Notes: generated by a model from the sequence alone, not told the origin. A DNA stretch of 64,000 nucleotides from Eutreptiella sp. 'Long Island Sound 2002' (GCA_964036045.1 OZ038379.1:29512001-29576000); one strand, 5' to 3'. Positions 10,801 through 54,352 are shown, counted from the first letter of the stretch. Translations and numbers: made by a program.

Positions 10801-13800
10801 ACAATTCATTTGGAAAGAAGGAGGTCATAAATGTTTGGTAATGCAACAAACGGCGCTCTTCGAATGAATTAGATTGCCTGCTTGTTTGCCCACAAGAGCG
10901 CTCTTTGCCAATGGGTTGCTGGGAAAGCCAATCAGTCTGACTGGCTGTTTTGAGTGGTTGGTCTTCGTTTGTGCAGGTGTCGATATGTGAACAGCACGTG
11001 CACAGTGCCAGTTTCTAGTTTATGCGGGGACCCTGGGGTGCACAATTCCAGCACTCTATTATGCTGCATGCTCCCTGTTGCACATACATTACTTCTACAG
11101 CCCTGCAGCCCTGAATATCTGTCGCTGTGTTCTCAGGGAGCAAGCTATGGCAGGTGCACTCACGTAAGACTCACAGAGCGTTGGGGGTGCTCTTCCGCTG
11201 TCAATCTGGAGGGTTTCGCCTCTTTCTGACAGCACAGTGTGTGCACAATGAACCAGTGGGCCTGCCCCATTGGGCTGCAGTTTATCTTCATTCCAATTTT
11301 GTCCCAGCCAGCCCAATTACACCTGTCTCTACAGGCCCTCCTTGCATTTTCCCAAGAGCAACGTCCACAGTGTGGACATGTGATGAACGGCTGAGGCTTC
11401 AGAAGGCTTGGAACCGGGCAGTGAAGTCTGACCCTGCCAAGAAAAATTCTGCTGTGATGAAGGCGTTGAATGAGACCGCTGGTGTGCATCAGCTTCAAAA
11501 CGACTGCAGCGCTTATGGAGACCCGGGCATCCCTGTGGGCACAGCTCTCGCATCACGGGCCCTCGCCAACGTCCTGAAGCTGCACACCCCCCCGATGGCT
11601 GGCATTTGGTGTGGGATTGAGCCTAAAGTGTGCCCGTTCCCCATCGTCTTCAGTATTGTCTTCTGTGGAGGGTATTCAGGTGTGCATCTGCAACCATGCA
11701 TGATGCGTGAGCTGAACTGAAACTTGGTGTGCACTATTCGCAAGTGTCATGGAAATGATGTGGGTACTGTGCATACCTATTTGCATTTTTCCCACTTGCC
11801 AGGCATGCAGACCCCTGTCCCAGGGTCATGAATGTTTTTGAAAAGTTTTGCGTTGCAAGCGCTGCAAAAAGCAAGCACTAACACGGACTGCGAACAACAT
11901 GAAATGACAAGGTGCAATTCAGAAACTAAAAGTGTGTTTTGCAAGAGTATGTGATGCATGTAGTTACTGAAATATAGGACACCACCCTGGGGCAAAGTGG
12001 GTCAGTCTGAGAGCAAAGCACCACCGTTGGGCAAGGTTGGAGCCAAAAATTGTCACATTGCATTTATTGTTGACACCATTTGTGTGACACCGCCTTTGGG
12101 CCAGGTGGGTGTTGGTGTCTGTGAGAGGCACTACCATTGGGTAAGGCAGGAGCCAGTTTGAAAATTGATTGTTTTGTCCCCCACTTCCTTACAGCCAGAG
12201 TGACCATGCTGATATGGGATAGTGAGGGCAAAATGACTGCAGGCACCAAACTGCAAGAGCCGCAAGATGCGGCTCCGAGCCACAACAGCCACCAAACGCG
12301 GTTGGTAGGCGCGAATCCTAGCTAGATGAGCCACGAAACGTGGCTCCAAGCTGTGAAATGTATCTCTGAGCTGCAAGATTCGGTTCCATGCTGCGAAACG
12401 AAACTCTGAGCTGCACGAGCAGCGCGAGCCGCGAAGCAAAGCTTCCAGCCACGCCTCCAACCTGCAAGAGCCGCGAGAGCCACAGAGACACAGCCCCAAT
12501 CCGCAACACACGGCTCCGAGTTGCAAGAGCCACAAGACACGGCTGTGAGCTGCTCTGAGCCGCGAGAGACCGAACGTGATGCCAAGTCATAGGAGCCGTG
12601 AAACTGGCTCTCACGGCTCAAAGCCGCGTTTCGTGGCTCAGACCGCTTGGGATCTGCGAGATGCGCAAGAGCGGCAAAACACAGCCCCAAGCAACTCCGA
12701 GCCACGAAACACGGCCCCGAGCCACTCCCAGCCACAAAATGTGGCTCCAAGCCGCTCCAATCAGCGAACCGCACGTATGAACAGCAAAATGCCTGCCGGG
12801 AAACACGGCTCCGAGCCACGATAGCCACTAAACGAGGACGTAAGTAGGGAGACGTAGCTCCTAGCCACAACCTACTAGAGCCGTGAAACAAATCTTTGCG
12901 CCGCAATAGCAGGGCAAGCTGCAAAACACAGCTCCCACGGCTCCCATCTGTTGCGAGGCACACCTCAGAGCCGCAAGAGCCACGAAGCACGGCTTCTAGC
13001 CGCGACTCCTAAGCCGCGGAACCCTGCCTGAGAGCCTCGAGAGCCGCCCATGAAAGCACCGAAACGTGGCTCCGAGCCGCTCGTAGCCGCGAAACACGGC
13101 TGCAAGCCATGAGAGTTGCGAATCACATCTCTGAGCCACAAAGTGCCAAGCTGCAAGAGCTGCGAAACACAGCTCAGAGCCACAACAGCTGCCAAGCGTG
13201 GCCCCGAGTCGCAAGAGTCAGGATACCTGGCTCCAAACCGCGAAAAGCATCTCCTAGCCGCGACCACGGCTCCAAGTCGCGAGAGCCGCGAAAAGCGCCA
13301 CCCAGCTGCGGAACAAATTTCTGAGCTACGAGAATGGTGTGAGCCATGCAACACAGCTTCAAGCCCCTCCACCCATGAAAAGCGCCCCTAAGAGCTATGA
13401 AATGCAACTGTGAGTTGCAAAACGTGGCTGCTAGCTGCGAGAGCCACCGTGGCTGCAACCCCAGCTATGGGTATAGTAACCAAATGGGCTATCAGACTTC
13501 AGACTTCAGACTTGTATGGACCATCACCCCTAACCCCCCACCCCCACCCCAACACCCTTTCTACCCCCCCCCCCCCCGTGTCAGACTCCCCCCCCCCCCC
13601 CCATGTCCCCCCCAATATCAAACTTGTCCATTGTCACCACACCCTTGAGGTGTAGAAGTGGGTTGTGGTCTCGACCCTAGCGTCTAAAACCCAACCAGTG
13701 CTTGCAACCCCTTCAATGATGGTACGTGCCCCCCCCCCCCCCCAGGGCTTCTTTAGAATAATTAAATATCAAGGGGGAGGGGGGTCCAAAACCCCCTTCC

Positions 13801-16800
13801 TCCCTCCCACAAACCCCCTCCCCCCCCCCCCTTTCCAATTCTGCAAAAGTTCAGTTTTGTGGTTCGTGACAGTGCATACCTACTGGAGGTCCCCCCCTTC
13901 ATTGTGGGGGACCAAATCTGCTGTCTACCCCCCTCACCTTGCTCTCGACTCTTCCCACCGTTAAACAGGGTACTGGGGGCCTGAGACTGCGTCACTTCCA
14001 AAAGTTTTGTTTCTTTTTTTGTTATCTTTTCTTTCCTGTCAGTTAAATGACGCTGTCTGCAGGTCTGGTGCCAAGGTAGGCCAAGGGGTTCTTTGGCCGG
14101 GTGTGGGGGGCCGAGAGGACGCCTTGGCACCAGGGAGTCTACGAGAGAGCAAGGCAGAGGGTTAGCTTAATACTGTAATTAATGCCCCTACGAGACTCTC
14201 GGCCCTCCCCTACTGGCAACCCCTCCTGCTTCGGCTTTTAAAGGTGTTGGTGAGGGAAAAATTGAGTGTAGGACACCGAGGACAGAATCATTGGGATGCT
14301 GCACTGTCCTGCCACCCCCCCCCCATTTTGCCTGTTGTGTTGTGTTCAAAGTATGTGCTCTGTCTGCACATGTCTGCACATTTCTGCTCTATCTGCTTTG
14401 TCTGCACATGCACATGGACCTGGAGGCACAGGGTAGTGGTTCTGGTGATAGTGAAGAAGAGCTGGCTCCTATGACCTCCTGTGACAAGGAAGATGAGGGT
14501 CCCGCTATGACCTACTCCTCGAGCTCCAGCTGTAGCTCCGACTCTAGCAGTAGCTCCAGCTCTGACTCCAGCTCTGGTTCAGAGAGTGAGTAAATGAGAA
14601 TGACCAACAACATGACTTTCACATTGACCAGCATGCAGTACATTTGAACAAGATTGTTTCCGTCTCTACCGGGCCACTATTGCATACGCAGGGCTAGGGC
14701 AAGGGTTGTGCAGTGCTCCAGGAAGTTCAGAATGGTTCCATGAATTAATAGCAACCCTCCAGGAATGAATGATCTGTTTTTACAACAAAACCCCAGCACC
14801 AAAAGGAAAAAAATCTGCTGTGATACATTTTGGTGCGCAAAGACAAGGGGGGGGCTGCTCTGGCCAAACCCCCCCCCCCTCCCTCCCCCGTCGAAACCCC
14901 CACCTCCCCTCCCCCCCCCCGCTCAAAAGAAGCCCTGCCCCCCCCCCCCACCCCATCTCTCTGACTCAAACCGATCGGGGGGCTCATATGGGACTGAAGA
15001 CAAGTGGGAACAGAATCCTGATGTCTGGCCCAAGCAACCTCACCTGAGCTAATCGGGTCGCTTTTGCTGGTGGGGTGGGTGGGTGGGGGTTCATCGGGTT
15101 GGGCCGGAACTGTGGAGAGGGGGGGTAGTGGGTTTCGAGTACGGCACAGCACAGCACGGCACAACACAGCACATCACAGCACATCACAGCACACCACAGC
15201 ACAGCACAACATACAGCGTAGCACAGCATATTACAGCACAACACAGCACCCTACGGCCGCCCAAGAGAGCCTCCCTCCCTCCCTCCCTCCCTCCCTCCCC
15301 TCCCTCCCTCCCTCCCACCCTGTCATTTCCCTTCTTGTGTGGTGAGGTTAGGGAGGGTATGCCTGTTTTTCTTTTTCAGGTTTTCTTTTATAGTAGAGTG
15401 CTTTCCCGCTTGCCAGCTTACCAAGGTCCGAACCCCAAAAAAAAATAGGAGGTATGTTACTCCGTTCCTTAGTTAGTTCCGGTGGACCCCTCTGTGAATT
15501 GTTTACCCCCCTCCGTGAATTATTTGACCGCTCTGTGAATTGTTTACCCCCCTCCGTGAATTATTTACCCCCCTCCGTGAATTATTTACCCCCCTCCGTG
15601 AATTATTTACCCCCCTCCGTGAATCATTTGACCCCTCTGTGAATTGTTTACCCCCCTCCGTGAATTATGTACCCCCCTCCGTGAATTGTTTACCCCCCTC
15701 CGTGAATCATTTGACCCCTCCGTGAATTATTTTACCCCCCTCCGTGAATTATTTGACCCCTCCGTGAATTGTTTACCCCCCTCCGTGAATTATTTCACCC
15801 CTCCGTGAATTGTTTACCCCCCTCCGTGAATTATTTCACCCCTCCGTGAATTGTTTACCCCCCTCCGTGAATTATTTTACCCCTCCGTGAATTATTTACC
15901 CCCCTCCGTGAATTTTTTACCCCCCTCCGTGAATATTTGTCCACAGGGGGGGAGGGGGGCACCACCTCAGTGGAATACCTATCCAGAGGGGGGGGCATAC
16001 ACCACCTCAGTGGAACATTTTTCCACACGGGGGGGGTACACCACCTCAGTGGAATATTTATCTTGAGGGGGGGGGTACACCACCTCAGTGGAATATCTAT
16101 CCAGAGGGGGGGGCGTACACCACCTCAGTGGAACATTTTTCCACAGGGGGGGGGGCACACCACCTCAGTGGAATATTTGTCCACATGGGGGGGGGGGCAC
16201 CACCTCAATGGAATATTTATCCAAAGGGTGGGGGTACACCACCTAAGTGGAATATTTATCCAGAGGGGTGGGTACACCACCTCGGTGGAATATTTATGCA
16301 GAAGGGGGGTGCACAGCAACTCAGTGGAATATTTATCCACATCGGGGGGGGGGGGTACACCACCTCGGTGGAATATTTATCCAGAGGGGGGGGTATACCA
16401 CCTCAGTGGAATATTTATCCAGAGGGGGGGGGGGTACACCACCTCAATGGAATATTTTTCCCGGCCTCCCATTTTCCCCAATGCTCCATTTTTCCACCCT
16501 TTTTTTTCTTTGGGGGGGACTGTTCCCCTCTGTTGCATGGTCTCCCATTCTTCCCAACTTTCAATTTTCATGATGGTTTTTTTTCTGGTGGCTGTGTTGC
16601 GGGGGGGGGGAGTGGCAGACTTTTCCTTGTCCCTTTCCGAGATGAAGGAAGGAAGGGAGGGGTCGGGTACCACACTTTTATCAGACTTTTGCTGAGATGT
16701 GTTCTATTTTATGTCCTTGACACGAGATGCCAAATCAGACTGCAGACTTCAGACTTTATACACATAGCTGTGCAACCCACAAGAGCTGCCACAACTACGA

Positions 16801-19800
16801 AACATGGCTCCAAGTTGTGAGAGCTGTGAAAGGCAGCTCTGAGATGTAGTGAGCCGCCAAACAAACCCCTAGCCCCATTCCGCCTCGTTTGGGGGTTCGC
16901 AGTGGCTTGGAGCCGTGTTCTGCGGTGCATAGTGGCTTGCAGGTGCGAAACGCCATTCCGTTGTCATCTACGTAAGCTGCGAAACACATCCTCAAGCTAT
17001 GAAACACACCGAGCTGCGAGAGCTGAGAAACACGGCTCCAAGCCGCCAGAGACGCGAAACGTGCCTGCAAGTCACAAAAGCTGCGAAATGTGTTGTATGT
17101 CCCCCCTCATACCTTGGTGTAGGCTTCTCACCTAAGCTGGTGCACCGCGGGGAGGGGCACTGAAAGGGAAGATACTTACATGGGGCGCTTGGTTTTGGCT
17201 GTGATGGTTTTCAATTCTTGGTTGCTTCCCCCCGTCAACTTTTTCACTGCTCTCACGGCTCAAAGCCTCATTTTGCAGCGCATTGGGGCGGTTTGCGGCT
17301 TGCTGCTGTGTTTTGTAGCTTGGAGCGGCTTGGAGCCCTGTTTTGTGGGTGGGAGTGGCTTGGTGCCCCATTTTGCAGCTCGAAGTGGCTCGGATGTGCA
17401 TTTCTGTCTCTTGCGACTTGAAGCCGTGTTTCGCGGCTAGGAGCCACATTTCGCAACTTGGAGTAGCTCCAAGCCGAATTTTGCTGCTCCTGCGTGTCTT
17501 GTGGCTCGTAAGTACTTTGAGCTGCGAAACACCCTAACTACTCCGAGTTGCGAAATGTGGGTTTGACTTGCGTGAGCCGCGAAACATAGCTCCAAGCCGC
17601 AAGATCCGTGAAGCACGCGTTCAAGGTGCTAGCCGCGAAGCTTGACTCCAAGCCGCTGTGAGCTGCAAAATGCAGCTGAGGTTTGGCAGCTTGGAGCGGT
17701 TGCGGCCGTGTATTGCGGCATACGTGACTGGGTGCCGCCTTCTGCGTATCTGAGGGGTTCGGAGATGCTTTTCACGCCACATGAGCCACAAATCACAGCT
17801 CCACATCACCACGCAAGCCACAAGAGCCCCAAGACGCGGCTCCGAGCTACTCCAAACCGTGAAACGCTACTCCGAGCCGCAAAAACCGCGAGAGCTGCAA
17901 AACGCGACTCCAAGCCGTGAGAGCCGCCAAATGCGGCTCCTAGCCGCTCCGAGCAGCAAAACGTGGCTATGAGCCGCAAGAGACGCGAAACACGCCTCAA
18001 AGCCACAAGAGGCACAAAAATGTGGCTTCGGAGCCGCGAAACGCACCTATGGGCCGCAACATGCGACTCCGAGCTGCAATATGCAGCTCTAAGTTGCAAG
18101 ATCCAAGTTCCAAGAGCCGCGAAACACTGCGATAGCCCCCAACAGGCGCGAGAATTGCAAAATAGGGCTCCAAGCCGCTTGAAGCTGTGAATCGCGGCTC
18201 CCAGACTAAGCTGCGAAACGTATCTCTGATTTTCAAATGCGGCTTCGAGCCAAAAGAGCTGTGAAATACAGCTCCGAGTCGTGAAAGCCGCGAGAAGTAG
18301 TCCGGCCGGGGAAACACAACTCCAAGCCAGCAAAGCCGCAAAACGCGGCTCAAGGGCAGGATAGCCGCGGAACACAAATCCGACCTGCGAGAGCCGCAAG
18401 TGAGGGGAAACACAGCTTTGAGTCACAAGAGCCGCAAAACGTGGCAACCACCCGCTCCAAGCCATGCAATCGGGGTTGCATTTTGCGACTCAGAGCCGCT
18501 TCTTGCAGTCGAAGCTGCGTTTTGCAGCTGTTGCGTCTTGGAGCGGCTTGTAGCCGCCGTTTGGGGTTTTCAGGGGCTCCAACCTGCACCCCTGAGCTTG
18601 GAGCAGCTTGCACCTTCGACACCCGTGAAAGCCGCGGAACGCGGCTCCAAGCCACTAACTCCGGCTACGAGTCGGGAGGACTGCAAAATGTGGCTCCTAG
18701 CCATGAAATGCGGCGTCAGAGTAGCAAAATGTGGCTGTGAGCCTTTCCGAGCCCGGAAGCGTAGCTTCAAGTAGCGAAATGCGGCACTAACGTTCGATAG
18801 CTGCCAAGTGTGTTCCGCAGCTCTTGCAGCTCGCAGCCTTGTTTTGCGGCTTGGAGCCGCATTTCGCGACTCTTATGACTTGGAGCCAAATTTTGTGGCT
18901 CTTGCAGCTTGGAGCCATGTTTTGTTGCTGTCGCGGCTTGGAGCCATGATCACACAACAAAATGCACATTCTCAAATGCACCATGTTTTGTTGCCATCGC
19001 AGCTCACACCCACTTTTCGTGGCTTGGAGTGGCTAGGGCGGTTTTTTTGGCACTTGAGGCTTAGAGCCGTGTTTTGCGACCTTTGCACCTCTTGTGGCTC
19101 GGAGCAGCTTTTCGCGGTTTAGAGCCGCTCGGAGCTGCGTCTCGCGGCTCGCACAGCTCGTAGTGGCCCGGAGCCGTGTTTCACAGCTCTCGTGGCCGGG
19201 GACAGCGGTTTGCGGCCCCACGGCTTTATGCCACCTTTTACAGCTTAAACACTCGTTTTGCGGTAAAGAGCCGCATTTTGCGGCTCGGAGCTGCTTGCGG
19301 CAGCATTTCGCTCTTGACCCTAGTGGCTCCAGGCCGCGAAAGGCAGCTCCAAACGAGCAAGCCGTGAAACGTAGCGTTGAGCTGCGAGGAACCGCGGAAC
19401 GGGGCTCAAAGCCGCTTTGAGCCGCAAAATGGGGCTCCAGCCCAGCTCCGTGCAGCCCGGAAATGCTCTTGGAGGCTCTTGCGGCTTGGAGCTTGGCCAC
19501 TAAGAGCAGTGCAAGCCGCCAGATACGGTTCCAGACTACTCCCAGGCAACCTAAGGCGCGGAATGTGGCTGCGAGACACGAGAGCCACAAAGCGCGGCTC
19601 CGAGCGGCTAGAGCCACAAAAAGTGCCTTTGGGCAACTTCCACGGCAATGTGCAGCCAATCCCAAGCAAATGGATCCCAAAGGGCCTCAAGTCCGTGCCC
19701 GTTTTGACATTGAGCACCGAACCAAGTGGGCACGCGGGTTTCTTGCGCCGTTTGTTGTCCAAGCATGGCATTGTTAGCCTATGCACCTGCCATATTCTTG

Positions 19801-22800
19801 TGCAATGTGTTGGATCCAAGTCTGCCCACCACGAGATTGATGACCGTTGGTGTTCCCAAACGCTCAAATTGCCACAGTGGTTTTCGGAGAATGGGAGGCA
19901 CAACTGCTTAGGGAATTGCTAAGTGGAGATTGCCACCCCCCCGCCAATTGCAGCATGGGACACATAACAACTGAAACCTCATAACAAACGTATTGCCCAA
20001 TTTAGTAAGGCCACAAGGGGCTGCACAACCATCTTGCACCTATATCAACAAAAAGAGGTGCACCAGGTACCAAAAGCATGGTGTGGTACTCACACTTCAT
20101 ATTTGACTTGGAAACCACCTATATCCGAGTCAAAAATGAGCTCACGAACATACCCCCCCCGCCCTTGCGCAAGCACCAAGAAAGTCAGAAAAACGACGGT
20201 CAGACCGGGTCCCAGTGCTTGGACAAAGCGGTGCTTGCGCGCGACGTGCGGTACTAGCGAAGCCAGGAGTAACGACATCAGTCATGGCTGAAACTCACAT
20301 CAAAACAAACAGTAGTGGGTTGCAGTAGTAAGCATAATGTTGTTATGAGCAGGAGGACTCATCTCAAACATGACACAGCCCCTATTTCCCTCGACAATCG
20401 GCACACAATCACGTTCTGTTAAGTTCTGTTAAGTTTCTGACCATAAAAACTGTGGCCAGAAAAACGATGGTCAGACCAGGTCCGGTGCTTAGACAAGGCG
20501 GTGCTTCCGCAAGAGGGGGGGGGGGGGGTATGTGTGTTGGAGTTGCTGGACACATCCAATGACAACACAACGTCCCATTCCTCCATGCACATGAATGCAT
20601 CCAACGGTTCAATTTTGTGTTTGCTCAGGTGTGCAGACACAAACACACAAAATAATGTTTTCCGATATGCCTCTATGGTAGGAGGATTCCCCCATCAAAG
20701 ACATAGTTCCCAAAAGAGCTTTGCCATTAGATTCAACTATGCGCTTCCACTAGACATCAAGTTAGGGTTAGGGTGACTGAACTGATGGACCAGTTATAAT
20801 CCTCCTTAGCGTGTACGGGGAGCTACCCCTTTCAGCAAGCACCATGAGCAACAGCAGCAAGTAGCAAGCAACCGCAATCCCGGGAGAAATGGGGAAAGAA
20901 GTCAAAAATCCGTGGTGGTGGCTCAGATTTGGCCGAAACTAAAGTGGATGATAGTCATGGGGATGAATCACAATCACAAATAGTTTGGGCAACAAATCCA
21001 ATGGTGGCGGCCAAGAATGGGCGTTGCAAGTAGTGGCAACTCTCAAAATCTGTCAAAAATGACAAAAAATGCCATTTTTGGGCGAATAGGGGAGTCTAGG
21101 ATGTTTGTGGAGGGAGGCATTTGCATTGAAACTAACCTAGATGATGAACAAATAAGACCAGGGAACACTATCTAGTAGCAAGTGGGCTCAATGACCCCCT
21201 TTGGTGGTCAAAAATGGCCAAAATCAGCCTTGACGGTCACCTTCTATGCTCAATTTTTCAAATATCACCTTCCTCCAGTGTGTTTGACTGCCATGGAATG
21301 CCTTTGGCAACCTTGTTGTGATAAATCATTGTGAATGGGAACACTTGGAAGCTATTTCAAGAATGCCAACACCCTTCAATGCCCCATTGGGAAGTGCTAA
21401 GGCAGGGGTAGCGTAGGCCAAATTTGAGCCAGAAAATGGCCCACAATGATTTTTCCCAAAATAAAAAAAAATGTTGCTAGATCACTTTAGTGCATAACCA
21501 ATTGGTTTTGCCTCTGCCCCCCCCCCCCCCCCAAGTCTGGTTGTGTTGTCACAAAAACACACACAATGATCGGCACCAAATACAAACGGCACTGTCTGTG
21601 GTCGGCCTTGCCCCCCAAAACTTACCAAACAACATATAGATTGATTTTGTTTGGTTGGAAATGTGCATAATGAAGCCACAATGATTGCTACACTCCGCCT
21701 TTGATGCCTCTTGGCACCAAATACAAACAGCACTGTCCATGGTTGACCTTGCCCGGAACCGTGTCTTGCGTCTCTCGTGGCTCAATGCCATTTTTCACGG
21801 CTTCAAGCCGCGTTTAGCTAGTGGGAGCGGCATTTTGCCGCTCTCTTAGTTGTCGGGACTTGGGGCTGCATGGCGCGGATCCCCGCCCCGAAATGCGGCT
21901 CCGAGCCACACGGGCCGCTAAAACTCTCGCGCTGCACAGCCGCATTTCGCAGTTGAGAGGTGCACCTCGAAACAGTTGCGGCTTGGAGCGCGGTTTGGTG
22001 GGTGTCGTCACAGCAGCAAGAACCACGAAACGCCGCTCTGAGCCACAAAAGGTGGATTTGAGTTGTAGGAGCCCCAAAATGTAGCTGCAGGTCACGAGAG
22101 TCGCATAATGTGACTCCAGGTCGCTTAGAGCCACGTAAGCGGCGAAACATGGCTGCCCGAAGCGGCTCTGTTTGTGATTAGAAAAGTCAATAACAACATC
22201 TAAACCTCTTCAGCAAAGCACACAACAGGAACACCAAAAGCACATCACATTTAAATCGCTAAGCTATTGGATGCTTTGGGTACACTCCATTGACTCCTAT
22301 TTGCACCACCAAGGTCCTCTTGGACCCATGAGTAAATCAAAATTGCACCTTGGTCATGCATGCAAAGTACGGGCTAACAAAGAAGAAGACGGGGACATGC
22401 AATTTTGTCATTACGAATGAAAGACGCCACTCTCTTTGCCCCCCTCCAAGGAAGCGCTAAATATGGCAATGCACAACAACGGAGGAGAAAGTACTTTCAT
22501 GCAAAGAAAGAGTGAACAACTGACAAGAAACGGCCCTCCAATCTTAAAGGGGTCAACAAGAAGAGGTGCGCTCAAAAAAATTGAAGAGGGAATGTCAACA
22601 AATAGGCAAGGGAACAATTGGATGTTGCATGTGGTTTGGCACAAACCATGGGAACACTTGTCCTATGCTCTTGGCCGTTGGAAGCACCTCCTTCGGTATA
22701 CAAACCATCCAACGAGCACCGTAGCACCTAAGACCAACAGTCCCTATGACCTTATTGGCTGTATCCAACACAATCCTTTTTACACCCCCCCCCTTTTTTC

Positions 22801-25800
22801 CCCTTGTGCCTTACATAACCTGGCAACCAGAGGGAGGGGGGCGGAGGTCCCTCTTCGAGGTGCCTTGCCGAAGGCAATAGACTTTTTGGCCTATACCAGT
22901 AGGGTTGGAAAATTCGTTTCACCACATGTGTCTACACCCAAAATGCTCAGACTTGTGGGTACAAATTTCGTCCCACTGTGGAGGCCCCTTGGCGTGGGAT
23001 TATGGAGCGGTATTGATTTTTCCCCAGTATGGGGCTCTTGAGAAAGTAGGGGCTATGTAGCCATATTGCACATTCATGATTTCTCCCCACTATGGGGACC
23101 CCAAGTCGAGGCTTGGCTTCAGGTTATGGTGCCTCTCTTATTTCCTCTTGGTAGGGGACCCGTTGGCCTGGGTGACGTGGCCACCCGTGGCCAAGGGAGA
23201 TGTGGCCACCAACACGATTGCTTGCAAACAATAGGATGTAAACAGTAGATGAAGACAACGTTGTTGATGTTACTATGTGTTGTGCACTGCTTGCCAGATA
23301 CAAGTTCAGTTTTATATGTATCTTTTCCCGTTCACAGTTGCAACACAGCTGCACTGTGCACTGTCCTGCACCTAAGATCCCAACAAAGACAAAAAAAGGC
23401 AACCACAGCCACAACAGTTTATGCTGAGCAGGTCATTATGCTACCAGTGCGGTCCTGCAGGGGTGCTCCCCCCTAGAACCCCCCCCCCCCCCTCCCGTGG
23501 ACCGTGCCCCGGCCTGGTCAAGCGAAGCCCTGCCCTGCCTGGACAGGGGTGCTCCAGGTCTGGGGCTTCAAACAGCCACAGATGGTGGAGCATGTCTCAG
23601 AGCCTTCACCCCCGCACATAACGTGGAGAAAGAGGCTGAGAGATAAGGCTACTGTGTGGGAGCAGCTGAAGTCTGCAGCCCATGGGGATCGGTTGCATTG
23701 ACAATGCCGAGTTGTACGTAGCCTGGTTTTCGGATTGTTGTTCGTGTATTGGGGAGTTCAGGTTATTTTTTCTTGGCCAAGGGCACACTTTCAATTTGCC
23801 TTGAGCTGGTTAGATTCCCATCCCTTTCTCGTCACCTTCACCTTTTTCTGCTTGGTGGCCAAAGGTTGGGGCAGGTGGTGCTGTGGAAGGAATCAATCCA
23901 CCCGCCCCAAAAGAATATATTATTTAGCCCTCACCATCATGTCACCCAGGTGCACAGGAATGTCCGAAAAGTAGATGAAAGTGGCTTTCTTGAATTGGTC
24001 TGATCCCAGTCCATTCCGCCCCCCTCCCCCCACCACACCAATGTTGCCTTTCAGGCCCCACCCTTTCGGGTGTCACAGCCATTCAGAACTCACCTGCCCA
24101 GTTTTTCCTTGTGTGATGTTGGTTCCCAGCTTTCCGCGCCTCTTCCCTTTTTGTGGGAAGCTTGTGTGAGTCAGCCCGAGGTGGTTTTGGGGCAATGCCA
24201 GTCGCCAAAATATGACAGGCCGGAGCGCCCGATCGTTTGGGCAAAACAAAGGGGTTCCAGTGTTGAAATATTGTACTCAGGGTTAGAAATGGAATTGCGT
24301 TGGGAAATGCTCTTCGATCTTTGTGATTACTTTTCAAACCGTTTCAGGGGATAGTATGCCTGGGTGCTTTTTGCTTGGGAGGGCATGGGTTGTAACATGG
24401 GCTCCATTGAATACTGACACATTTCCTCTTCTTGCAATGTCTCTTGAACTCGTGCTTCCGAGGGTCGGTTGCCTCTAACAGGAGGTATCCCCAAAGGGTT
24501 TGTAGGGATATCCCCAGGGCCTCCCAGAAGTGTGTACCCATGGCAGGGTGCACACGTCTGTAGCACAGCCTTTCCTTGTAGTGCCAGAGACCCCAAAACT
24601 GCAATGAGGCTGCAGGGGAAAGCTGGGAGGACAAGGATTTGCTGCTGTCGGGGGCTGGCAGGGTTTCTGAGCACCTCCCAGAAGCGTACACTGTTGGCTG
24701 ATGCACGCTCATGAATGGTGCTTGTCTGTGTACTGAGAGCTTTGTGCTGTGCAATCGTTTTGTCCAACCTGCCTGCTGCAGAATCAGTGGACCTTGGCAA
24801 TCAGTTGATGTATACTGGGGAAGGACGGGTCGACAAGAAGGGATTTATGCAGGCTCATCAGGAATTGGAGGCTGGCAACCGTGCGCTTCTCCAGTCTATG
24901 ATCCATGGCTCACATGTTCGTGTCATTCGCGGGTCTACAGCAACAAAGGTGGGCGTTCAACCATACCTTCCACCACAAGGATACAGGTTAGACTCTCTTC
25001 TCCTGATTATGCGTTGACCATGCCCAAGGATGCTCAGATTACAAATGGGGCCTTTGTGGGGCCGCCCCAACTTGATTTGGGTAGTCCTCTTAGGAAGGGG
25101 CAGGTTTGGGATGGCATGAGTAGGCAGACAGGTGGAGAGCATTTCTCCTCATTTTGGCCGAGTTTTACTTACCGAACCTTCGTTTTCATTCTTTTGCCCT
25201 CCCTCCCTCCAATCCTGTGTATACACGGGTTGGACCTGCCACAGAACCTGTCAGAACCTCACTCGGCAGCAGGAAGACCATTCGGTGCTGTCCCAGCCCT
25301 GAATTCACATGGTAAGAGCCTCAGACACATACATGTCAGCGCACACAGCCTCACCATGACCCTTGCTTCGTAGAAGCGAGCCCAATTAAGGATGGAGGAA
25401 GGTAGATACTGCCGGGCAAATCAGTGCAAATATCTGTCCACAAATCAGTGCACGTACCATTGCAACCGTCAGTGCCATATTCCTTTGGCTATGATGCAAG
25501 AAACAGAGTGCCTAGGAGAAGGGAGGCCAACCCAGGTGCACAAGGCACCTCTAGAGTTGCACAGATGAATGAATGCACAGACAAGACCGGAGGAAAAATG
25601 ACAAAATGTGTACCGGGGAACACATGTACCCGCATATTGTATCCGGTAACAAAATAATGTTCCCCAGCATGCCTGACGACGAGGACGTCGTAGAAGGTCG
25701 TCAGGCATGTCGGGGAACATGTTGGGTAACATTTTACCAAAATGTGGGAACATTTTCCGTTTCACATTCAAAACACAATTTTTGGACCAAACCACCATTC

Positions 25801-28800
25801 TCAACAGATCCAGCACCCTCAAAAAACCCCCTTGCCCACAAAAGCACAGCAGGTGACCGGTGACGTTGGGGAACACCCCGGGTGGTACCCTCCCCCCCCC
25901 GTGCCCAAGAACCACCTTGCGCAAGAACCAACCCCTGGTTCCGCGGTCAAATTCTCACATCACTTTTTTTACCAGGGTAGTGGGTCTTTCATGTTTCTGG
26001 TGGATGTAGGACAGCTATTCAGGTGTGCAGGACATCATTTCATGTGTGTTACTATGGGTCCCCCCATCAGGGGGGACCCTATCAGTCACTCACAGGCTCA
26101 TGTTTGCTTTTGCACCACCTCTTCCATTCCTTGTTCTGTACCACAGACGTTCCCATGTACACTGCCGGTGAGTCTGTCTTCTATCGGCGATCTGATGGCT
26201 CTCTTGTTCCAGCCACTGTGTTGGGTCCTGGTGCCCAGTCTGAGACCGTGCAGATTGAGTACAAACGCAATGAGCGTCTGGTGAGGCACCCAGCTGCTTT
26301 AATTGCCAACCTCTCGCGTCCCATTCCCACGATCCCCGATCCTCCGGAATGGGACAGTGCACCAAGTCGGTCCCCATCCCCACCCCCAAGGACACGACCA
26401 ATGGAACGATCTGCCAAACGACGCCCACGGCATTCTGCGCCCCCCAGTGTGCGACCTGTCCAGATTCAACCAGAGATTACCAATTTCTTTTCTGCGGCGC
26501 CTGTCCAGAAGCAAACGGAGATCACCAACTTTTTTGGGCCTAATGCTTCACTCCCCACCAGTAGCAGTTCTGCACAGGACACTGCACCCACAATCGTTGT
26601 CCGCGCGGAGCCGGCAGTTCGCAAGCGCAAGCGGTCACGAGCTGAAAGCGACAGGGCGCCAAAGCGTGTGCATTACGATGTACGTCGCAAATTGCGTTGT
26701 TTGGCGTACTCTGACAAGCACGGGCCACGCGAGGCAGCACGCATCTACAAAGTGGGGAGCCACGGTTCGGTGTGTAAGTGGGACGACAAGCGCAAGGCGT
26801 TGGAAAAATTGGCGAAAAAAAAGGGCACGGCAAAGAGTCTTCACCCCGGCAAGCAATCACGGTATCATGAACTGGAGGGGGAGCTCCGAGCGTGGATTGT
26901 CAAGCGACGTGCACGACGCATTTGCGTGACGAAACGAATGGTGATAGCAAAGGCGTACAAGATGAGTACAGAAATAGCACAGCTCAAGGGTGATCGTTTG
27001 GCCAATTGGTGGTCTGGATTTCGGCGCCGGAGGAGACTGACGATGAAGAAAGTATCGTCATACCGCCGCGTGGATGACGAATTGCTGGCACCTTTACTAA
27101 AGCACTACAGGTCCGTATGTGTCCATTTTCGTCCCGCGTGCAGCCATTTTCGTCGTGCGCGCATCAAATTTCGCTGTGTGCGCGTGTACTTTGCAGGGCC
27201 AACATCCACCGTAGCCTTAGAGATCGCCGATATCAGTGGATCGGAAGCGGCGATGAGACTAGCGTGTCTCTCGAGCCAATTGCAAAGACCACCCTTGAAG
27301 CGAAGGGGGTGAGGAAGTCGGTGACGCGCATCCGGGGCCGCATCAAGGACAATGTCACCGTGTATCTTCATTTCATGGTCCGTGTGGAGCACACCACCGA
27401 TGCCGACGGTGATCCCGCACTGGCCCTCACTGATATTTTGCGTGGAAGACCCACCATTGTGTGGAAGGGTAAACCCAATGGTCGCGTGCAACAAGAGGTA
27501 CAGAAAAACAGAGTTGCACGTGTTGCACAAACAGTTCAGGTCAATGCAAAAACGGATGAAAGAACGATGCTATATATTGTAAAAAATGCATTGCCACCGT
27601 TGCCTGCCAAAGACAAGGGCCTGTACCCAGTGGATGGGGCTCCATCACACATGCATGCGTCCGTTCCTTTGGCGATGAAAAAGCAGAGGTATCAGGAATA
27701 TATTAGCCCACCAGGTGTGACCCCATGGGCGCAGGCCTGTGATAAGATAGAAATAAACAAAAATTTTGGCCAAGACATGGAACATCGGTACACAGATTGG
27801 GTCGGAGAGGAGCTGGAACGCGATCCTGATGACCGCAAACCAGTCCCTGCCCCACCCCGGGACCTGTTCGCACAGTGGGTCCGAGACGCCTGGGAGCATA
27901 TCCCTGATGAGGATCTGCGTAAGGCTATGCTGCGTGCTATTTTTCCAGGCGGTTTGAAGCTATCGCAGCTTGAAGATGTTGCGTTTTTTGCAGAGCAACA
28001 CCCAATGAACGTCGATTTTTCTGGGCACGCAGCCCAGAATGACTGTGACTCCGATTCCTGCATGGACACTGGAACAGACACAGATTCAGATTCAGACGCA
28101 GATGCAGATTCTTCCAGTGACTCGGGGTCGGACGTTGGGGATGTCTTTGACTCTGATGACAGTTCTGACTCTGACGGGGCAGGTGATGGTGCTTCTGCGA
28201 ATGACCAGTGTGTGGATATCATCTGGGCAAAGGCAGCCAGGGGTGTCTGGGGCTTGGCACATGTGTTCAACAACAAGCGGTTTTTCACAAGGGACATCAT
28301 GGATGATGATGCAGTCCCCATGCATTTTAATGTCCCAGACCCCAAGCCTAAGCCTAAGCCGAAGCCAGCTCCAAAGGCGGGTGTAGCACCGAAGCCTGGC
28401 CCCAAGGGGCAGCACAGACAGGAATTGAGGATGGTGTATCACAGGAAGAAGGGTTTCACGTCTCAGCCAGTTGAACAGTAGATCATCCCATGCACGTTGG
28501 AAGGCACACTACAGCCCAGTCAGCTGCGATTCACTCCTTTGGTGTTCATTTGTCAACGTGGTTAACTGTGGGAAAGGAGAGGGCACGCATGTCCCGGCGC
28601 AACACGCCGGAAAATTTTTTTTCCGCGGTACGGGGTTGCCCACGGCTGTGCGCAAGAACCAACCCCTGGTTCCGCGGTCAAATTTAGGGGGAAAAGTGTG
28701 CGCAAGAACCAACCCCTGGTTCCGCGGTCAAACATTGCTGGTTCTTGGGCACGGGGGGGGAGGGTAAGGTGGAGGCTGCGAAGCTGAAGGTGGGGAAGCC

Positions 28801-31800
28801 CGTGTTGGTGCAGAAGAGGCAGAGCCGCGGGGGCGTTTACTTCGGCACCATCCGCAAGGTACCCTCGTTCTTTGCACTCCTCGTGTCAGGTTTGCATTTT
28901 TTTCTTCCTGCATTTCTTTTTGCTCTTCTCCTCTGTGCAGTTAACAACGAGGGAGATCATCCTCACCGACACCGTCAGCTACAATGCCTCGCAAGGTAAA
29001 CCAACAAATGTCAGGTTTTCCTTTCGTATTCCTTGTTATTTTCCCATGTTCCCGTTTCCCACATGTATCGCGTTGACCCCGTTTTGCTGCCTTCCCCTTC
29101 TTGTCCTCCGACGTTTCCTTGTGTAGGCGCGTTGCAGTCCACCACTGCCGCCGGGACCGTGTCGTCTCGCTCTGGCGGCTTGTCGACATCAAGGCCCAAA
29201 AGAAGAAGAAGAAGAAGGGGGACTCCAGCAGTGAGGATGAGTCCTCCTCATCGTCGTCATCCTCTTCCGATTCTTCTTCTTCAGCCTCCTCCAGGTATGC
29301 CCGCCTTCTTGTGGGTAGTTTCACTTTTCCACATTGTTCCTCCGCCCTTATCCTTTCGTTGTTCCGTAATGAGAATGAGGATGAGAATGAAGATGAGAAG
29401 GCGGAAGGGGAGTCGTCAGGCGATGTGTCCGAGGTCAAGGTCAAGGAAGCGGAGGACGTCAAGGACGTGAAGGGAAAGGGAAAGGGAAAGAGGGCAAACG
29501 AGGGGAAGGTGGCACCCAAGGACACAGAATTCAAGGCAGAGGGGAGCGCACAGTGTCGCGACAAAGGAAAAGAAGAAAGCAAGAAGGAAGCAACGAAGAA
29601 GAAGTGGCACAGGAAGGACAAAGCAGAAGAGGAAGAGGAAGAGGAAGAGAAGCCCACAAAGAAGAGGAAGGGCAAAGAAGAAGAGGGAGAGGAGGAGAAG
29701 CCCAAAAAGAAGGGCAAGGCGGTTCCCGTCGGTAAGTTAACACGGTTCGCAACCGTCAAACCCTCTAAGGCAGGAGGCGCCAGGACTGTGCCGGTAGGGG
29801 CACCCGCAGGGAGAGGACGGTCGCCGGCGCGTGCCATGCCCACGGGATCCGGAAATTTATCAACAAGCTCGGGGACCTCATTGGCATCAAACTAGCCCAG
29901 GTCAAGCAGCACTATCGTGTTTGCCTAGACAGGGGCAGCCGGTCGGACAAGGGACACGGGCGTGCTCTGCTGGCGGCCTGTGTCATTGCGCCCTGTGAGG
30001 CTGAGGCAGATGTGCCGGACAGGGCCTGCGGCGTGCGGGGGGAATACAGGTACGCGCAAGTACGGGCACAAGAAGGCTAGCGAGATCGTGGGAGATGGAG
30101 GAGGACTGCCCACGGTCGGGGGCATTGATGTACTCAGGTGTGCGTGTTGGGAACACTAAGAACGTTCGGGAACAACTCTATTACCGGGTACATTTAGCGG
30201 GTACACGTGTACCCGACGCTGAGAACGTTGGAGAACAATACTGTTAGCGGGTACAATACGCGGGTACACATGTGTTACCGGGTACAATTAGCGGGCACAC
30301 GTGTACCCGACGCTGAGAACGTTGGGGAACAATACTAGTAGCGGGTACAATACGCGGGTACACATGTGTTACGAGGTACAGTTAGCGGGTACACGTGTAC
30401 CTGGAGCTCAGAACATTGGTTAACAATATTGTTAGCTGGTACAATGCGCGGGTACACATGTTCCCTCTTGTTTTTGTCTTTTGTTACTGTCTGTAGTGGA
30501 GTTCGTGAAGGAAGTGGCGGTGTGCCCAGGGTGTGTGGGGACCGAGAACCCGGATGAGGACGTCAACGTCAACGACGACGATTTCGGCCAGCCGAGCCCC
30601 CTCTCCTCAATCCACAGCCCCCCGGGTTTGAGCGCACAAACCCTCCGTCACCGCGACAAGCAGCAACAACACCAGCAGCCGCAGTGCCACCAGCAGCCGC
30701 GGCACCACCAGCAGCAACAACACAAGCAGCACCTCCAGGTCCCAGTTCCTCACCTCTCGCACAGACGCCAAAGGAAAGGGGGAAGTGTGGCCAATGGCAT
30801 GAGCGGGGGGAGCGACAAAAGCATGATGTTTGGGTATGAGATGGCAAATCTCTGGGAATTGAGCCTCGAAGACTTGATGGCATTGCGTACAAAGTGTGGG
30901 CGGTGGCTGTAGCACATTGAGTTGGAGATAAGGAGCGGCGGCAGGAGCAACGGGACATCATGGACCATCAAGAGGTGGAAAGGGAAGCGGAGGCAGCACG
31001 GCGCGGGAGGCTGAGGGCAGAATCAGATCCCCAATATGACCCAAGTATGCCCACCGACGACGGGGACTGGAACACAGACCCCGCGGTCCACCCCACACCC
31101 GACGCCACCTCAGAGCCCAAGACAGAGGATGACCCGAACGTCCAAGAAGACAATCCGGATCTCTAGGAGGTCCCGCTCGACCCGGAGGACAACCCCGACA
31201 TCCAGCAGCCCGCGCTCCACATGGATGACGACCCGAACGTCCAACAACCCCCGCTCCACATGGAGGACGACCCGCCCAAGCAGCCCCCACCCAATACGGA
31301 GCGTGAAGTCGTGCGGATGTGTCCGAATTGCCGGATGGAGTGGGATGTCAACGCGGCGCCGGAGCTGTGCACCGAGTGCCCAAATACCAAGCGCATCAAC
31401 ATGGAGTGGCCGCCCGGGACTGACCATCATTGCACGATCTTCGGTCCACGGCAAGTATGCATCCTGGTCGTCCCTGCCGCTCCCTTTAGCTGTTCTTTTG
31501 CACGATGGTGTGTGTGTGTGTGTGTGTGTGTTTGTTTCCAGGGGCGGACTGCAAAAGCTGAGGTAGAAGCAGAAGCAGAAGCTGAGGGTGCCGCAACGGA
31601 GGCAAAAGATCAAAAAGAGAAGGAGGAAGAACAGACGGTATGTGTCCGGGTCGTCGCTGTCCGCCCCTTTGGTTGTTCCTTTGCGAAATTGTGTGTGTCT
31701 GTGTTTCCAGGGGTACGCCCAAGAAGGAGAAGCTGCAGAAGCCGAGGTACTGCAACGGAGGAGGAACAGAAAGTATGTGTCCTGGTCATCACTGTCCGTT

Positions 31801-52800: not shown

Positions 52801-54352
52801 TAGCGGACACATTTATTCAGGGTCTGCCTTTGCCAAAGATCATCTACTCAAGGGTATGTGTGGAGATTGGTGACGATAATGAAAGCGAGCAAGCCAGTCT
52901 GCAGCACACCCCATATGATCATTTTCACTGGGGTGACATTTGGAAAGAGGCACATGTAAAGCCGCTGGATATTAGTTTTGTGGATCCGTTTGACAAAAAT
53001 GGGCGTATACTGCACTGGTGGGTGGACAGGTGCTGATTCTTCTTGTCTTCTGTCGTTGTGCAGTCGAGCCAACCTCCCGTCGCCACACTCCGCAATTTGG
53101 TACCGGAATTGTTATTGTTCCAGCATTTATCCTCAAGATGAGTTTTTCAGCATCAACTCCATTTTCTCTCTAGTGCCAGATCTTAGTTGTAGTATCTGAA
53201 GGAGTATCAAAGCAACGCAAATGGTGCTGTGACACCATGCTTTTCTGAGTATGTTGGAACGTTTGTTTTCCCAATTTTGGTTGGAAACGCTGGCCACCTG
53301 CCATCTGTTGATCTTCATCGCCCCTTGATGCTTGGAACCCCCCTCTCTCTCTGTTTGTTTCCCCTTTTGTCTGCAATTCTCTGTTTTGTCTCTCCTGTGA
53401 CAATTGTGGGGCTATGTGTTGCCCATCTTCCTGCGCTGGTCTCACCCACCCTCAGTCCTGCAATCTCGGCACACCCTGCATCAGATGAAAAACGCCACAT
53501 GCTGTGGGCCCCATGGGATAGGGCGGATTGGGTGATCTGTACGACTGCACACAGTCGGAATAAGCCGTTATGAATTGGTTTTTGTGATTCCTCCCTTTGC
53601 TCAACTATGGCAGCTTTGGGGGCATCAAAATGATTGATGAAAAGCAACTCAACACTACTGCCAGTTTGTCGAAGTAGCGAGGCGACTCCAACTCATATGT
53701 GTACACCCATCCACAGGCTGGTAAGGAGGGCAATGCAGACAACTGTTGTGTGCCATGGATGGTGTCATTCGAGGAGTCCTCCCCCTTGGTCTGCGCTTGG
53801 GTCCTCCACACTCAACACGGTGGCAGGGCTGATTGGACATGCTACTTGCAGTTGCTTTGTCCAGTGGAGTCTGCCCATTCTGTCCGGTGTGCCGCCCATA
53901 TATGCCCACCTTCGAGTTCTCAATGGGATTTGAAATGTGAACATTTGATGAAATCTAAGGCCCCAAAGCGCCGCACAGGAATTCGGCTTTTCCTGGTTCG
54001 TCCAGTCGTGTCGGATGCTATCCTCATGTTGTGTGGGATGTCAATGTTCTGTCATTTCTTCAGTGTAGGTGGTTCTTGGGCGCTGGTAACGCATAATTTG
54101 ACTGAAGTGTGTGTATTAATTTGTTCAACTGCTAAAGCTGTGGGGGATCATGCCGGCAGACTGATGTGTGTGTGTGTGTGTGTGTCTGTGTGTGTCTTTC
54201 TGAGTGTCTGTTTTTTTTTTCGAAAGGCGCCTAGCCACATGACATTATTTCTAATAGCCCAACGAAGAGTCTTCACGTCCAGGCCCAGTGTTTTGTCATG
54301 CCATCCGCAGGGCGTTGGTCGGCTGTTGGTGTGTCTGCATAGTGTGTGTGTG

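Follow-up and report, generated by a model that had tools for sequence, protein, structure and literature searches.

Organization of the locus

The window analyzed here, a stretch of 64,000 nucleotides from Eutreptiella sp. 'Long Island Sound 2002' (GCA_964036045.1, OZ038379.1:29512001-29576000), contains three exons of an SRA (YDG) domain and, downstream on the same strand, pieces of a SET domain and of a post-SET-like motif (Table 1). SRA domains read DNA by base flipping and connect methylated cytosines with histone marks; this connection is made by UHRF1 in animals, by SUVH proteins in plants.

Table 1. Features of the SRA-SET locus, in positions of the window.
Feature	Position	Strand	Remarks
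SRA exon 1	11335-11679	+	Phase 1 at both ends; SAD_SRA profile 3-50
Codons tat tca	11673-11678	+	First stacking Tyr (UHRF1 Tyr466 counterpart) and Ser at Tyr+1
Intron 1	11680-24781	+	13,102 nt, GT..AG
SRA exon 2	24782-24986	+	SAD_SRA profile 54-109; both borders RNA-backed
Codon tca	24784-24786	+	Ser at Tyr+3; unchanged in RNA
Codons tat act	24811-24816	+	Second stacking Tyr (Tyr478 counterpart) and Thr (Thr479 counterpart)
Intron 2	24987-44547	+	About 19.6 kb, gt..ag; donor 24986/24987 backed by the X5 contig
Pogo/Tc5-like transposon ORFs	26023-28481		In intron 2; HTH_Tnp_Tc5 and DDE_1, both below Pfam cutoffs
SRA exon 3	44548-~44750	+	YDG end of the domain, RYDGLYTV; SAD_SRA profile 117-146
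SET domain start	55023-55106	+	Pfam SET 23.3 bits (cutoff 22.4); tblastn with plant SUVH
SET end (NHSCNPN) and post-SET-like Cys motif	56147-56392	+	SET profile 50-105, 39.9 bits

All three SRA pieces were matched by the Pfam SAD_SRA profile (PF02182), exon 1 with 21.9 bits (E 1.6e-4), exon 2 taken alone with 42.2 bits (E 8.6e-11; cutoff 30.7) and exon 3 with 14.6 bits (E 0.029), and tblastn matched exon 1 (11376-11681) and exon 3 (from 44546). Exon 1 can be aligned to SRA homologues over their N-terminal half and retains their invariant His and G-I. In a PDB sequence search, the best solved relatives of exon 2 were SUVH9 (E 2.3e-8), TagI (E 6e-5) and SUVH5, while exon 1 gave no match at E 10. 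Each piece was present as a single copy within the window (motif scan and tblastn). The phases of the splice junctions match across the three exons, and the reading frame is unbroken across the 33 kb over which they are spread. This region is a real SRA domain, transcribed and spliced.

Judged from the sequence alone, exon 1 is delimited by an acceptor (..tctctacag/gc at 11334/11335) and a donor (cag/gtgtgc at 11679/11680). It ends with tgt gga ggg tat tca g at 11679, followed by gt, and its final letter is the first base of a Glu codon. Exon 2, preceded by ag at 24780-24781, opens with the aa that completes this codon (Tyr+2), then reads tca gtg gac, ctt ggc aat cag ttg atg and tat act ggg, and ends with ...VRVIRG...PPQGY and a final ag. 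The 3' border of exon 3 was placed solely from a tag/gt site. Intron 1 is filled with repeats, namely 21-nt and 39-nt units arrayed in tandem (15487-16461) and dispersed repeats of about 65 nt from 12.2 to 19.6 kb.

Further downstream, NHSCNPN lies within an open stretch (56009-56392) and a post-SET-like CHCGYKDCC near 56370; we infer that the SET exons belong to the same transcript as the SRA exons. Since SET and post-SET parts are also carried, the gene is classed, on its domain content, as SUVH-like, of the SRA-SET type. The pre-SET interval between SRA and SET gave one weak tblastn match, on the opposite strand. A euglenid spliced-leader-like sequence at 54197-54220 (0 expected by chance) bears out the euglenozoan host that the initial annotation had considered; an Rfam search of the whole window gave no match.

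RNA evidence and the splice junction

Contigs of two sequencing runs were spliced at this locus, one of the two runs being RNA (X5, an estuary metatranscriptome). In the 641-nt X5 contig, letters 235-442 correspond to window positions 24779-24986, and in the 1051-nt contig of the other run (X6), letters 858-1051 correspond to 24779-24972, with 0 differences in both cases. Both contigs extend upstream with sequence absent from 20000-24778. At the start of exon 2 they read CAG followed directly by AATCAGTGGAC, and this 3-nt overhang equals the final three nucleotides of exon 1 (tCAG); the match to the genome breaks off at the letter that is t in exon 1 and g in the intron. After exon 2, the X5 contig continues for 199 nt, which would fit within the 203-nt exon 3.

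The Glu (gaa) and Ser (tca) codons are thus read directly in the X5 and X6 contigs. Because the contigs read in this way, the mRNA encodes x-Glu-Ser-Val-Asp whatever exon lies upstream. The initial annotation had named another acceptor or a small extra exon restoring Asp among the findings that would overturn its model: the contigs revealed no alternative acceptor or mini-exon of this kind, and a motif scan and tblastn of the introns revealed no second SRA-like piece or Asp-restoring exon.

The contact of exon 1 with exon 2 was deduced, the contig letters being read from 24779 onward, and an exon other than 11335-11679 might directly precede exon 2, in which case the spacing of the two tyrosines would not be 12. 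We consider this very improbable. Indeed, the contig overhang is exactly the CAG of the exon 1 end and stops where exon 1 differs, the phases match, and no further SRA-like piece was found within the window. Moreover, the first stacking Tyr is the last exon 1 residue matched (profile position 50) and the exon 2 match begins at its second residue, profile positions 51-53 being filled by exactly three residues, S, E and S, which leaves no space for a missing exon and creates no overlap. Even with a different upstream exon, Asp would not be restored. It is therefore strongly supported that GGY directly precedes S-E-S-V-D in the mRNA, in accordance with the splicing from 11679 to 24782 initially proposed. 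Separately, an in-frame AIVLS immediately upstream of the exon 2 acceptor was considered as a copy of the end of exon 1 and rejected, its DNA similarity not exceeding that of shuffled controls.

An unusual triad in the base-flipping pocket

Joining 11679 to 24782 places the two tyrosines (codons 11673-11675 and 24811-24813) 12 residues apart, a spacing that depends on the deduced exon contact; both stacking residues are retained, as had been claimed. Also kept are the thumb region (His-x-x-x-A-G-I), G-G-Tyr, Val-Asp, Thr-Gly following the second Tyr, and the VRVIRG and YDG motifs, and among pocket and flipping residues the change is confined to the acidic triad that follows the first Tyr, which reads Ser-Glu-Ser where Glu-Asp-Asp is usual. 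In a gapless alignment, the Ser at Tyr+3 takes the position of UHRF1 Asp469, TagI Asp58 and UHRF2 Glu498, so that the replacement of Asp469 by Ser stands and is read as tca in RNA, and the Glu at Tyr+2 takes that of the cytosine-reading Asp418 of SUVH5.

These positions are documented in solved systems. UHRF1 Asp469 lies at Tyr+3, with Thr479 cited for cytosine preference (PMC5995235); SUVH5 Asp418 binds the Watson-Crick edge of 5mC and 5hmC, as does UHRF2 Glu498 (PMC4740795); TagI Asp58 lies at Tyr+3, and the pocket carboxylate is described as the characteristic determinant of cytosine versus thymine (PMC6212794). By the loop-length measure of PMC4740795, V-F-C-G-G-Y-S-E-S-V counts 10 residues, as in UHRF2, against 9 in SUVH5. 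This length, together with the S-V-D ending, which resembles the D-V-D / E-V-D of UHRF1/2, would favour a register with Ser, rather than Glu, at the carboxylate position.

A profile word search with 9 SRA domains gave 3600 proteins, the 120 listed being nearly all canonical bacterial SRA-HNH proteins. In the resulting sample, which is biased to the consensus, Asp stood at Tyr+2 in 128 of the 130 sequences and likewise at Tyr+3 in 128, and Y-E-D-D occurred in 125 of the 130, mostly bacterial SRA-HNH. The S-E-S triad was unseen elsewhere among about 150 SRA sequences examined. When the exon 1 translation was used in a word search, nothing matched within its length range. An exhaustive phmmer search with exon 2 yielded 16 matches, all of them plant SUVH or bacterial SRA-HNH proteins, the best being 44% identical overall and others up to 53%, and no orthologue. 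The sole match of exon 2 to a metagenome locus was dismissed as a chance match in an unrelated, bacterial-looking contig.

Such a triad may reflect relaxation, with the SRA fold kept for DNA binding or scaffolding and the acidic residues decayed, no particular base being read. All three triad residues are off the consensus of 128/130 sequences, exon 1 is quite divergent (see its profile score and the PDB search above) and no orthologue was found that would show conservation. Nevertheless, we regard this explanation as unlikely: His, G-I, G-G-Y, V-D, Y-T-G, VRVIRG and YDG are all retained, and the frame is intact over three exons of a gene that is transcribed and correctly spliced, which suggests selection on the pocket rather than decay.

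Proposed function

Our preferred explanation, to which we give roughly even credence, is that of an intact, expressed SRA domain in a euglenid SUVH-like SRA-SET methyltransferase, in which Glu stands in for the missing Asp and a 5-modified cytosine is read. From a mechanistic point of view, the domain, split by two very long introns with repeats and a transposon, would still flip out and hold 5mC, perhaps also 5hmC. The Glu at Tyr+2 would take the reading role, combining the position used by SUVH5 (Asp418) with the residue type used by UHRF2 (Glu498). Because SUVH5 Asp418 sits at Tyr+2 and UHRF2 uses Glu, the pocket wall would still have a carboxylate, and this neighbouring Glu may replace the missing Asp. 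The longer Glu and the small Ser may widen the pocket, hence the possible accommodation of 5hmC. As in plant SUVH proteins, the SRA domain would then target the H3K9-type methylation carried out by the SET domain to DNA that is methylated. These analogies are the basis on which we infer what Glu does, what is bound and how this is coupled to histone methylation; by them, 5mC or 5hmC would be the most likely ligand.

Besides the loop length and the S-V-D ending, two observations weigh against a takeover by Glu: a triad altered at all three residues departs strongly from the 128/130 pattern, and no orthologue was found in which S-E-S is conserved. As regards the host lineage, Euglena has been reported to possess a DNMT1, which groups with green algae, a DNMT5 and heavily methylated cytosines (PMC12344493, PMC12455990), so the usual ligand is present there.

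An altered base specificity of the S-E-S pocket, as initially suggested, is possible. If Ser occupies the carboxylate position, selection of cytosine may be lost, and the pocket may instead read 5hmU or its glucoside, base J, or else any 5-substituted pyrimidine that is flipped out. The Ser read in RNA at Tyr+3, the role ascribed to the carboxylate in the preference for modified cytosine against thymine (PMC6212794), the 10-residue UHRF-type loop with its S-V-D ending, which favours the Ser register, and a triad unique in about 150 sequences are in line with such a change, as is a euglenid host, base J being present in Euglena DNA according to PMC1874636. We nevertheless rate it as distinctly improbable, less so than the splice alternative and more so than relaxation. 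The Glu at Tyr+2 can give a carboxylate, like SUVH5 Asp418, and the Thr tied to the cytosine preference of UHRF1 is retained. Canonical SRA pockets, such as that of TagI, lack the room for a glucosylated base, and abundant 5mC is reported in Euglena. Furthermore, no SRA domain reading 5hmU or J was found among the papers that a literature search listed, and the module known to bind J, from JBP1, is described as a novel DNA-binding domain (PMC3141245). For 5hmU or base J in particular, nothing in the analysis favours these ligands, and a reader of either is a minority possibility. That the pocket of this SRA-SET protein reads 5hmU or base J, or does not discriminate C from T, and couples such a mark to histone lysine methylation is slightly less probable again.

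An expressed SRA-SET gene with S-E-S is found in a lineage reported with both heavy 5mC and base J. If Glu takes over, the protein would be an ordinary 5mC/5hmC reader, and a further hint, beside the green-algal-like DNMT1, that in euglenids DNA methylation and H3K9 methylation are joined in a loop of the plant type. If the carboxylate truly lies outside the pocket, the gene would be a natural experiment in SRA pocket retargeting. Should the reading of 5hmU or base J be true, SRA readers would for the first time include one for a non-cytosine modification, and histone methylation would for the first time be tied to the base J pathway.

Comparison with known systems

The present module is an SRA domain by profile, and the J-binding domain of JBP1 has been called a novel type (PMC3141245). 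Bacterial SRA-HNH proteins (TagI, ScoA3IV) have a similar SRA sequence; in TagI, the walls formed by Tyr55 and Tyr67 are also 12 apart and the Ile of A-G-I adjoins the 5-methyl group (PMC6212794), but Asp58 occupies Tyr+3 and the partner is an HNH nuclease. UHRF1 and UHRF2 share G-G-aromatic-x-x-x-V-D...Y-T-G with equal spacing, including V-D after the triad. Their carboxylate stands at aromatic+3, whereas here Ser is found there and Glu one residue earlier, and their partner domains are RING, PHD and TTD, against SET in the euglenid gene. UHRF2, with Glu498 as its reading carboxylate, has a wider pocket and prefers 5hmC.

Plant proteins of the SUVH2/SUVH9 type and SUVH4 (KYP) gave the best sequence matches of exon 2, the plant matches being 51-53% identical (44-53% when bacterial SRA-HNH proteins are included), and plant SUVH proteins share the order of SRA then SET and the post-SET Cys motif; they differ by a canonical Y-E-D-D and by being plant rather than euglenid. 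SUVH5 (PDB 3Q0B/3Q0C, among others) differs by Y416-N-D418-V-L-D...Y428 against S-E-S-V-D, with Asp rather than Glu as the acid, by a Val-to-Val loop of 9 residues instead of 10 and by Gln392 as thumb residue where Met is found here, and is only about 30-50% identical. It is nonetheless likewise an SRA-SET methyltransferase with two Tyr 12 apart, a non-acidic Tyr+3 (Val in SUVH5, Ser here) and a carboxylate at Tyr+2.

Domain architecture and splicing

The SRA domain of the euglenid gene appears to be under selection, to be expressed and to be capable of base flipping. When 11679 is joined to 24782, the translation is exactly the one written in the initial annotation, with two Tyr spaced 12 residues apart, and the exons fall on adjoining ranges of the Pfam SAD_SRA profile. 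Searched alone, the exon 1 translation matched profile positions 3-50 (E 1.6e-4), the last matched residue being Tyr, and the exon 2 translation matched positions 54-109 from its residue 2 (E 8.6e-11, 42.2 bits, cutoff 30.7); exon 3, whose first nucleotide, a, completes the Arg codon opened by the ag ending exon 2, corresponded to positions 117-146. Positions 51-53 are exactly Ser, Glu and Ser, so that the profile leaves no space for a missing exon and shows no overlap. Since both exons match SAD_SRA separately, the SRA identity of the predicted product is not a chance resemblance. By six-frame motif scan and by tblastn with 16 SRA proteins as queries, the three exons were the only SRA pieces in the 64 kb.

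Features of the predicted SRA-SET gene and its introns (window positions)
Feature	Position	Strand	Description
Exon 1, most likely start	11335	+	after ..tctctacag; 345 nt, phase 1 both ends
Exon 1, 3' end	11679 (last nt)	+	tgt gga ggg tat tca g, then gtgtgc
Intron 1	between exons 1 and 2	+	13,102 nt
Dispersed degenerate repeat, intron 1	12259-19619		~65 nt, ~30-nt sub-period
Inverted pair, intron 1	12687-12773 / 17307-17393		87 nt
Two adjoining tandem arrays, intron 1	15487-16461		21-nt units (about 22 copies) and 39-nt units (about 13 copies)
Exon 2, acceptor	24780-24781	+	ag, then aa tca gtg gac ctt ggc aat cag ttg atg tat act ggg gaa gga cgg
Exon 2, 3' end	24985-24986	+	ag, then gt; exon 2 begins phase 1
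Intron 2	between exons 2 and 3	+	about 19,560 nt
Two overlapping long ORFs, intron 2	26023-28481	+	429 and 454 aa; HTH_Tnp_Tc5 and DDE_1 matches, both below Pfam cutoffs
SRA exon 3, start	44548	+	behind ..ctgtgcag; 203 nt; YDG end of domain
Spliced-leader-like site	54197-54222	+	ctttctgagtgtctg(t)11cg
SET-matching open stretch 1	54771-55106	+	Pfam SET 23.3 bits, cutoff 22.4
SET-matching open stretch 2	56009-56392	+	Pfam SET 39.9 bits, cutoff 22.4

Splicing was also evidenced by sequencing runs. In a search with window 24300-25300, DNA runs of 'organism A' covered the whole stretch, and two further runs, the estuary metatranscriptome X5 and X6 (labelled 'organism B'), covered only about one fifth of it, which is exon 2's share. 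The runs were then aligned to window 20000-25999, a region covered continuously by the DNA run X1. Letters 235-442 of a 641-nt X5 contig correspond to window 24779-24986, and letters 858-1051 of a 1051-nt X6 contig to 24779-24972, both with 0 differences; the extra sequence upstream (234 nt in X5, 857 nt in X6) and downstream (199 nt in X5) had no counterpart on 20000-25999. The donor at 24986 is exact, as the X5 match ends there. At the other end, the match extends 3 nt (CAG) beyond the acceptor of exon 2 in the 5' direction. Exon 1 ends in tCAG and the intron in gCAG, so that CAG aligns either way and the match halts at the first differing letter; this overhang is indeed a prediction of the exon 1-exon 2 splice model. 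The X5 flanks of 234 and 199 nt would fit within exons 1 and 3, respectively. Direct joining of exon 1 to exon 2 in the mRNA is an inference, strongly supported. A wrong exon 1 junction is very improbable given the profile fit and the CAG overhang.

Whatever the upstream exon, the RNA sequence across the border is ..c-a-g-a-a-t-c-a-g-t-g-g-a-c.., in codons Nca-gaa-tca-gtg-gac, where N must differ from g, as the match would otherwise have been longer. The mRNA therefore encodes (Ser/Pro/Thr)-Glu-Ser-Val-Asp, with 0 differences from the DNA at those codons, and an alternative acceptor or small exon restoring Asp is ruled out at these positions.

Gene type, host and intron contents

The gene is predicted to be SUVH-like, with an SRA and then a SET domain on the same strand; the second SET-matching stretch carries an NHSCNPN motif and a post-SET-like CHCGYKDCC. 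Among solved structures, those closest to exon 2 were plant SUVH9 (E 2.3e-8), TagI and SUVH5, and an exhaustive search placed fragments of plant SUVH proteins and SRA-HNH enzymes of bacteria closest (44-53% identity). No orthologue was found in the protein collections searched.

The Euglena spliced-leader sequence matched window 54197-54220 with 3 mismatches (0 matches expected by chance), which in part corroborates a euglenid host. The site lies inside the gene, flanked by (TG)n microsatellites, with the first SET-matching stretch about 0.7 kb downstream; it is probably what is left of a trans-spliced RNA that was retro-inserted. Euglena has a DNMT1 grouping with green algae, plus DNMT5 (PMC12344493), the nuclear DNA of E. 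gracilis shows heavy cytosine methylation (PMC12455990), and Euglena DNA is reported to contain base J (PMC1874636), so that the host lineage has both candidate ligands. Exon 2 was present at 100% identity in X5, X7 and X8, which are metatranscriptome and metagenome runs from estuaries; this euglenid, or a strain very close to it, therefore lives there or is carried in by the water. The same spliced transcript occurs with 0 mismatches in X6, labelled as a different organism.

Both introns are rich in repeats, tandem as well as dispersed, and the two long ORFs point to a pogo/Tc5-like transposon in intron 2. Window 20200-20600, 22800-23000 and 25800-26000 gave very deep contigs at 90-95% identity in all four runs, and these stretches look like high-copy dispersed repeats of the genome. 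At 24751-24765 (+), in intron 1 shortly before the acceptor of exon 2, the exon 2 frame encodes AIVLS, which resembles the SRA strand S-I-V-L-S-G-G-Y and through which several tblastn alignments extend. Across the six frames of the window, the pattern [AS]IV[LIVM]S has only two occurrences; the AIVLS stretch has no DNA similarity to the exon 1 end and is absent from the X5 and X6 contigs. It may be due to chance or be what remains of an earlier exon border.

The base-flipping pocket

The euglenid domain keeps the invariant His, A-G-I, G-G-Y, V-D, Y-T-G, VRVIRG and YDG. In the TagI model, the Ile of A-G-I adjoins the 5-methyl group (PMC6212794), and Thr479 contributes to cytosine preference in UHRF1 (PMC5995235). 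The thumb residue is Met, as in some bacterial relatives, where UHRF1 has Val and SUVH5 Gln. After the first stacking Tyr, the sequence runs Y-S-E-S-V-D, with Glu at the second residue (+2) and Ser at the third (+3). Among 130 SRA sequences sharing this 12-residue distance between the two aromatic residues, Asp occupied +2 in 128 and +3 in 128, and the triad was E-D-D in 125; this sample came from our own searches and is skewed to canonical bacterial enzymes. The S-E-S triad accordingly appears rare.

The carboxylate stands at +3 in UHRF1 (stacking Tyr466/Tyr478, Asp469; PMC5995235), in TagI (Tyr55/Tyr67, Asp58; PMC6212794) and in UHRF2 (Phe495, Glu498; PMC4740795). In the UHRF1 register, the initial annotation was literally right in placing Ser at the position of the cytosine-reading Asp. 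The weaker step is its further proposal, a possible loss of cytosine selectivity. The Val-to-Val loop (V-F-C-G-G-Y-S-E-S-V) counts 10 residues, as in UHRF2 and against 9 in SUVH5 (PMC4740795), and the S-V-D ending resembles the D-V-D and E-V-D of UHRF1/2; both features lean towards the UHRF register and hence towards that proposal, although Glu at +2 keeps a carboxylate. For TagI, the carboxylate contact is stated to be what favours modified cytosine over thymine (PMC6212794). A relaxed pocket, reading no particular base, is unlikely. A specificity shifted off cytosine, with 5hmU or base J among the possible targets, draws on the loop features above, has the Glu against it and seems slightly less likely still. 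The observation is confirmed and its interpretation partly supported: a known domain occurs here, in an unusual host, with a new sequence variation.

Sequence alone is insufficient to fix the register of the loop. From a mechanistic point of view, the pocket wall would retain a carboxylate in the Glu at +2, and the chances are about even that the domain still reads 5mC or 5hmC by means of this residue. In SUVH5 (stacking Tyr416/Tyr428), the carboxylate, Asp418, is found at +2 (PMC4740795), the position of the euglenid Glu; the SUVH5 sequence, S-G-G-Y416-N-D418-V-L-D-N-S-D-V-L-I-Y428, has Val at +3, and that of SUVH6 reads Y-D-D-H-L-D. An acid at +2 with a non-acid at +3 is thus the SUVH5/6 pattern, while the euglenid carboxylate is of the same residue type, Glu, as that of UHRF2.
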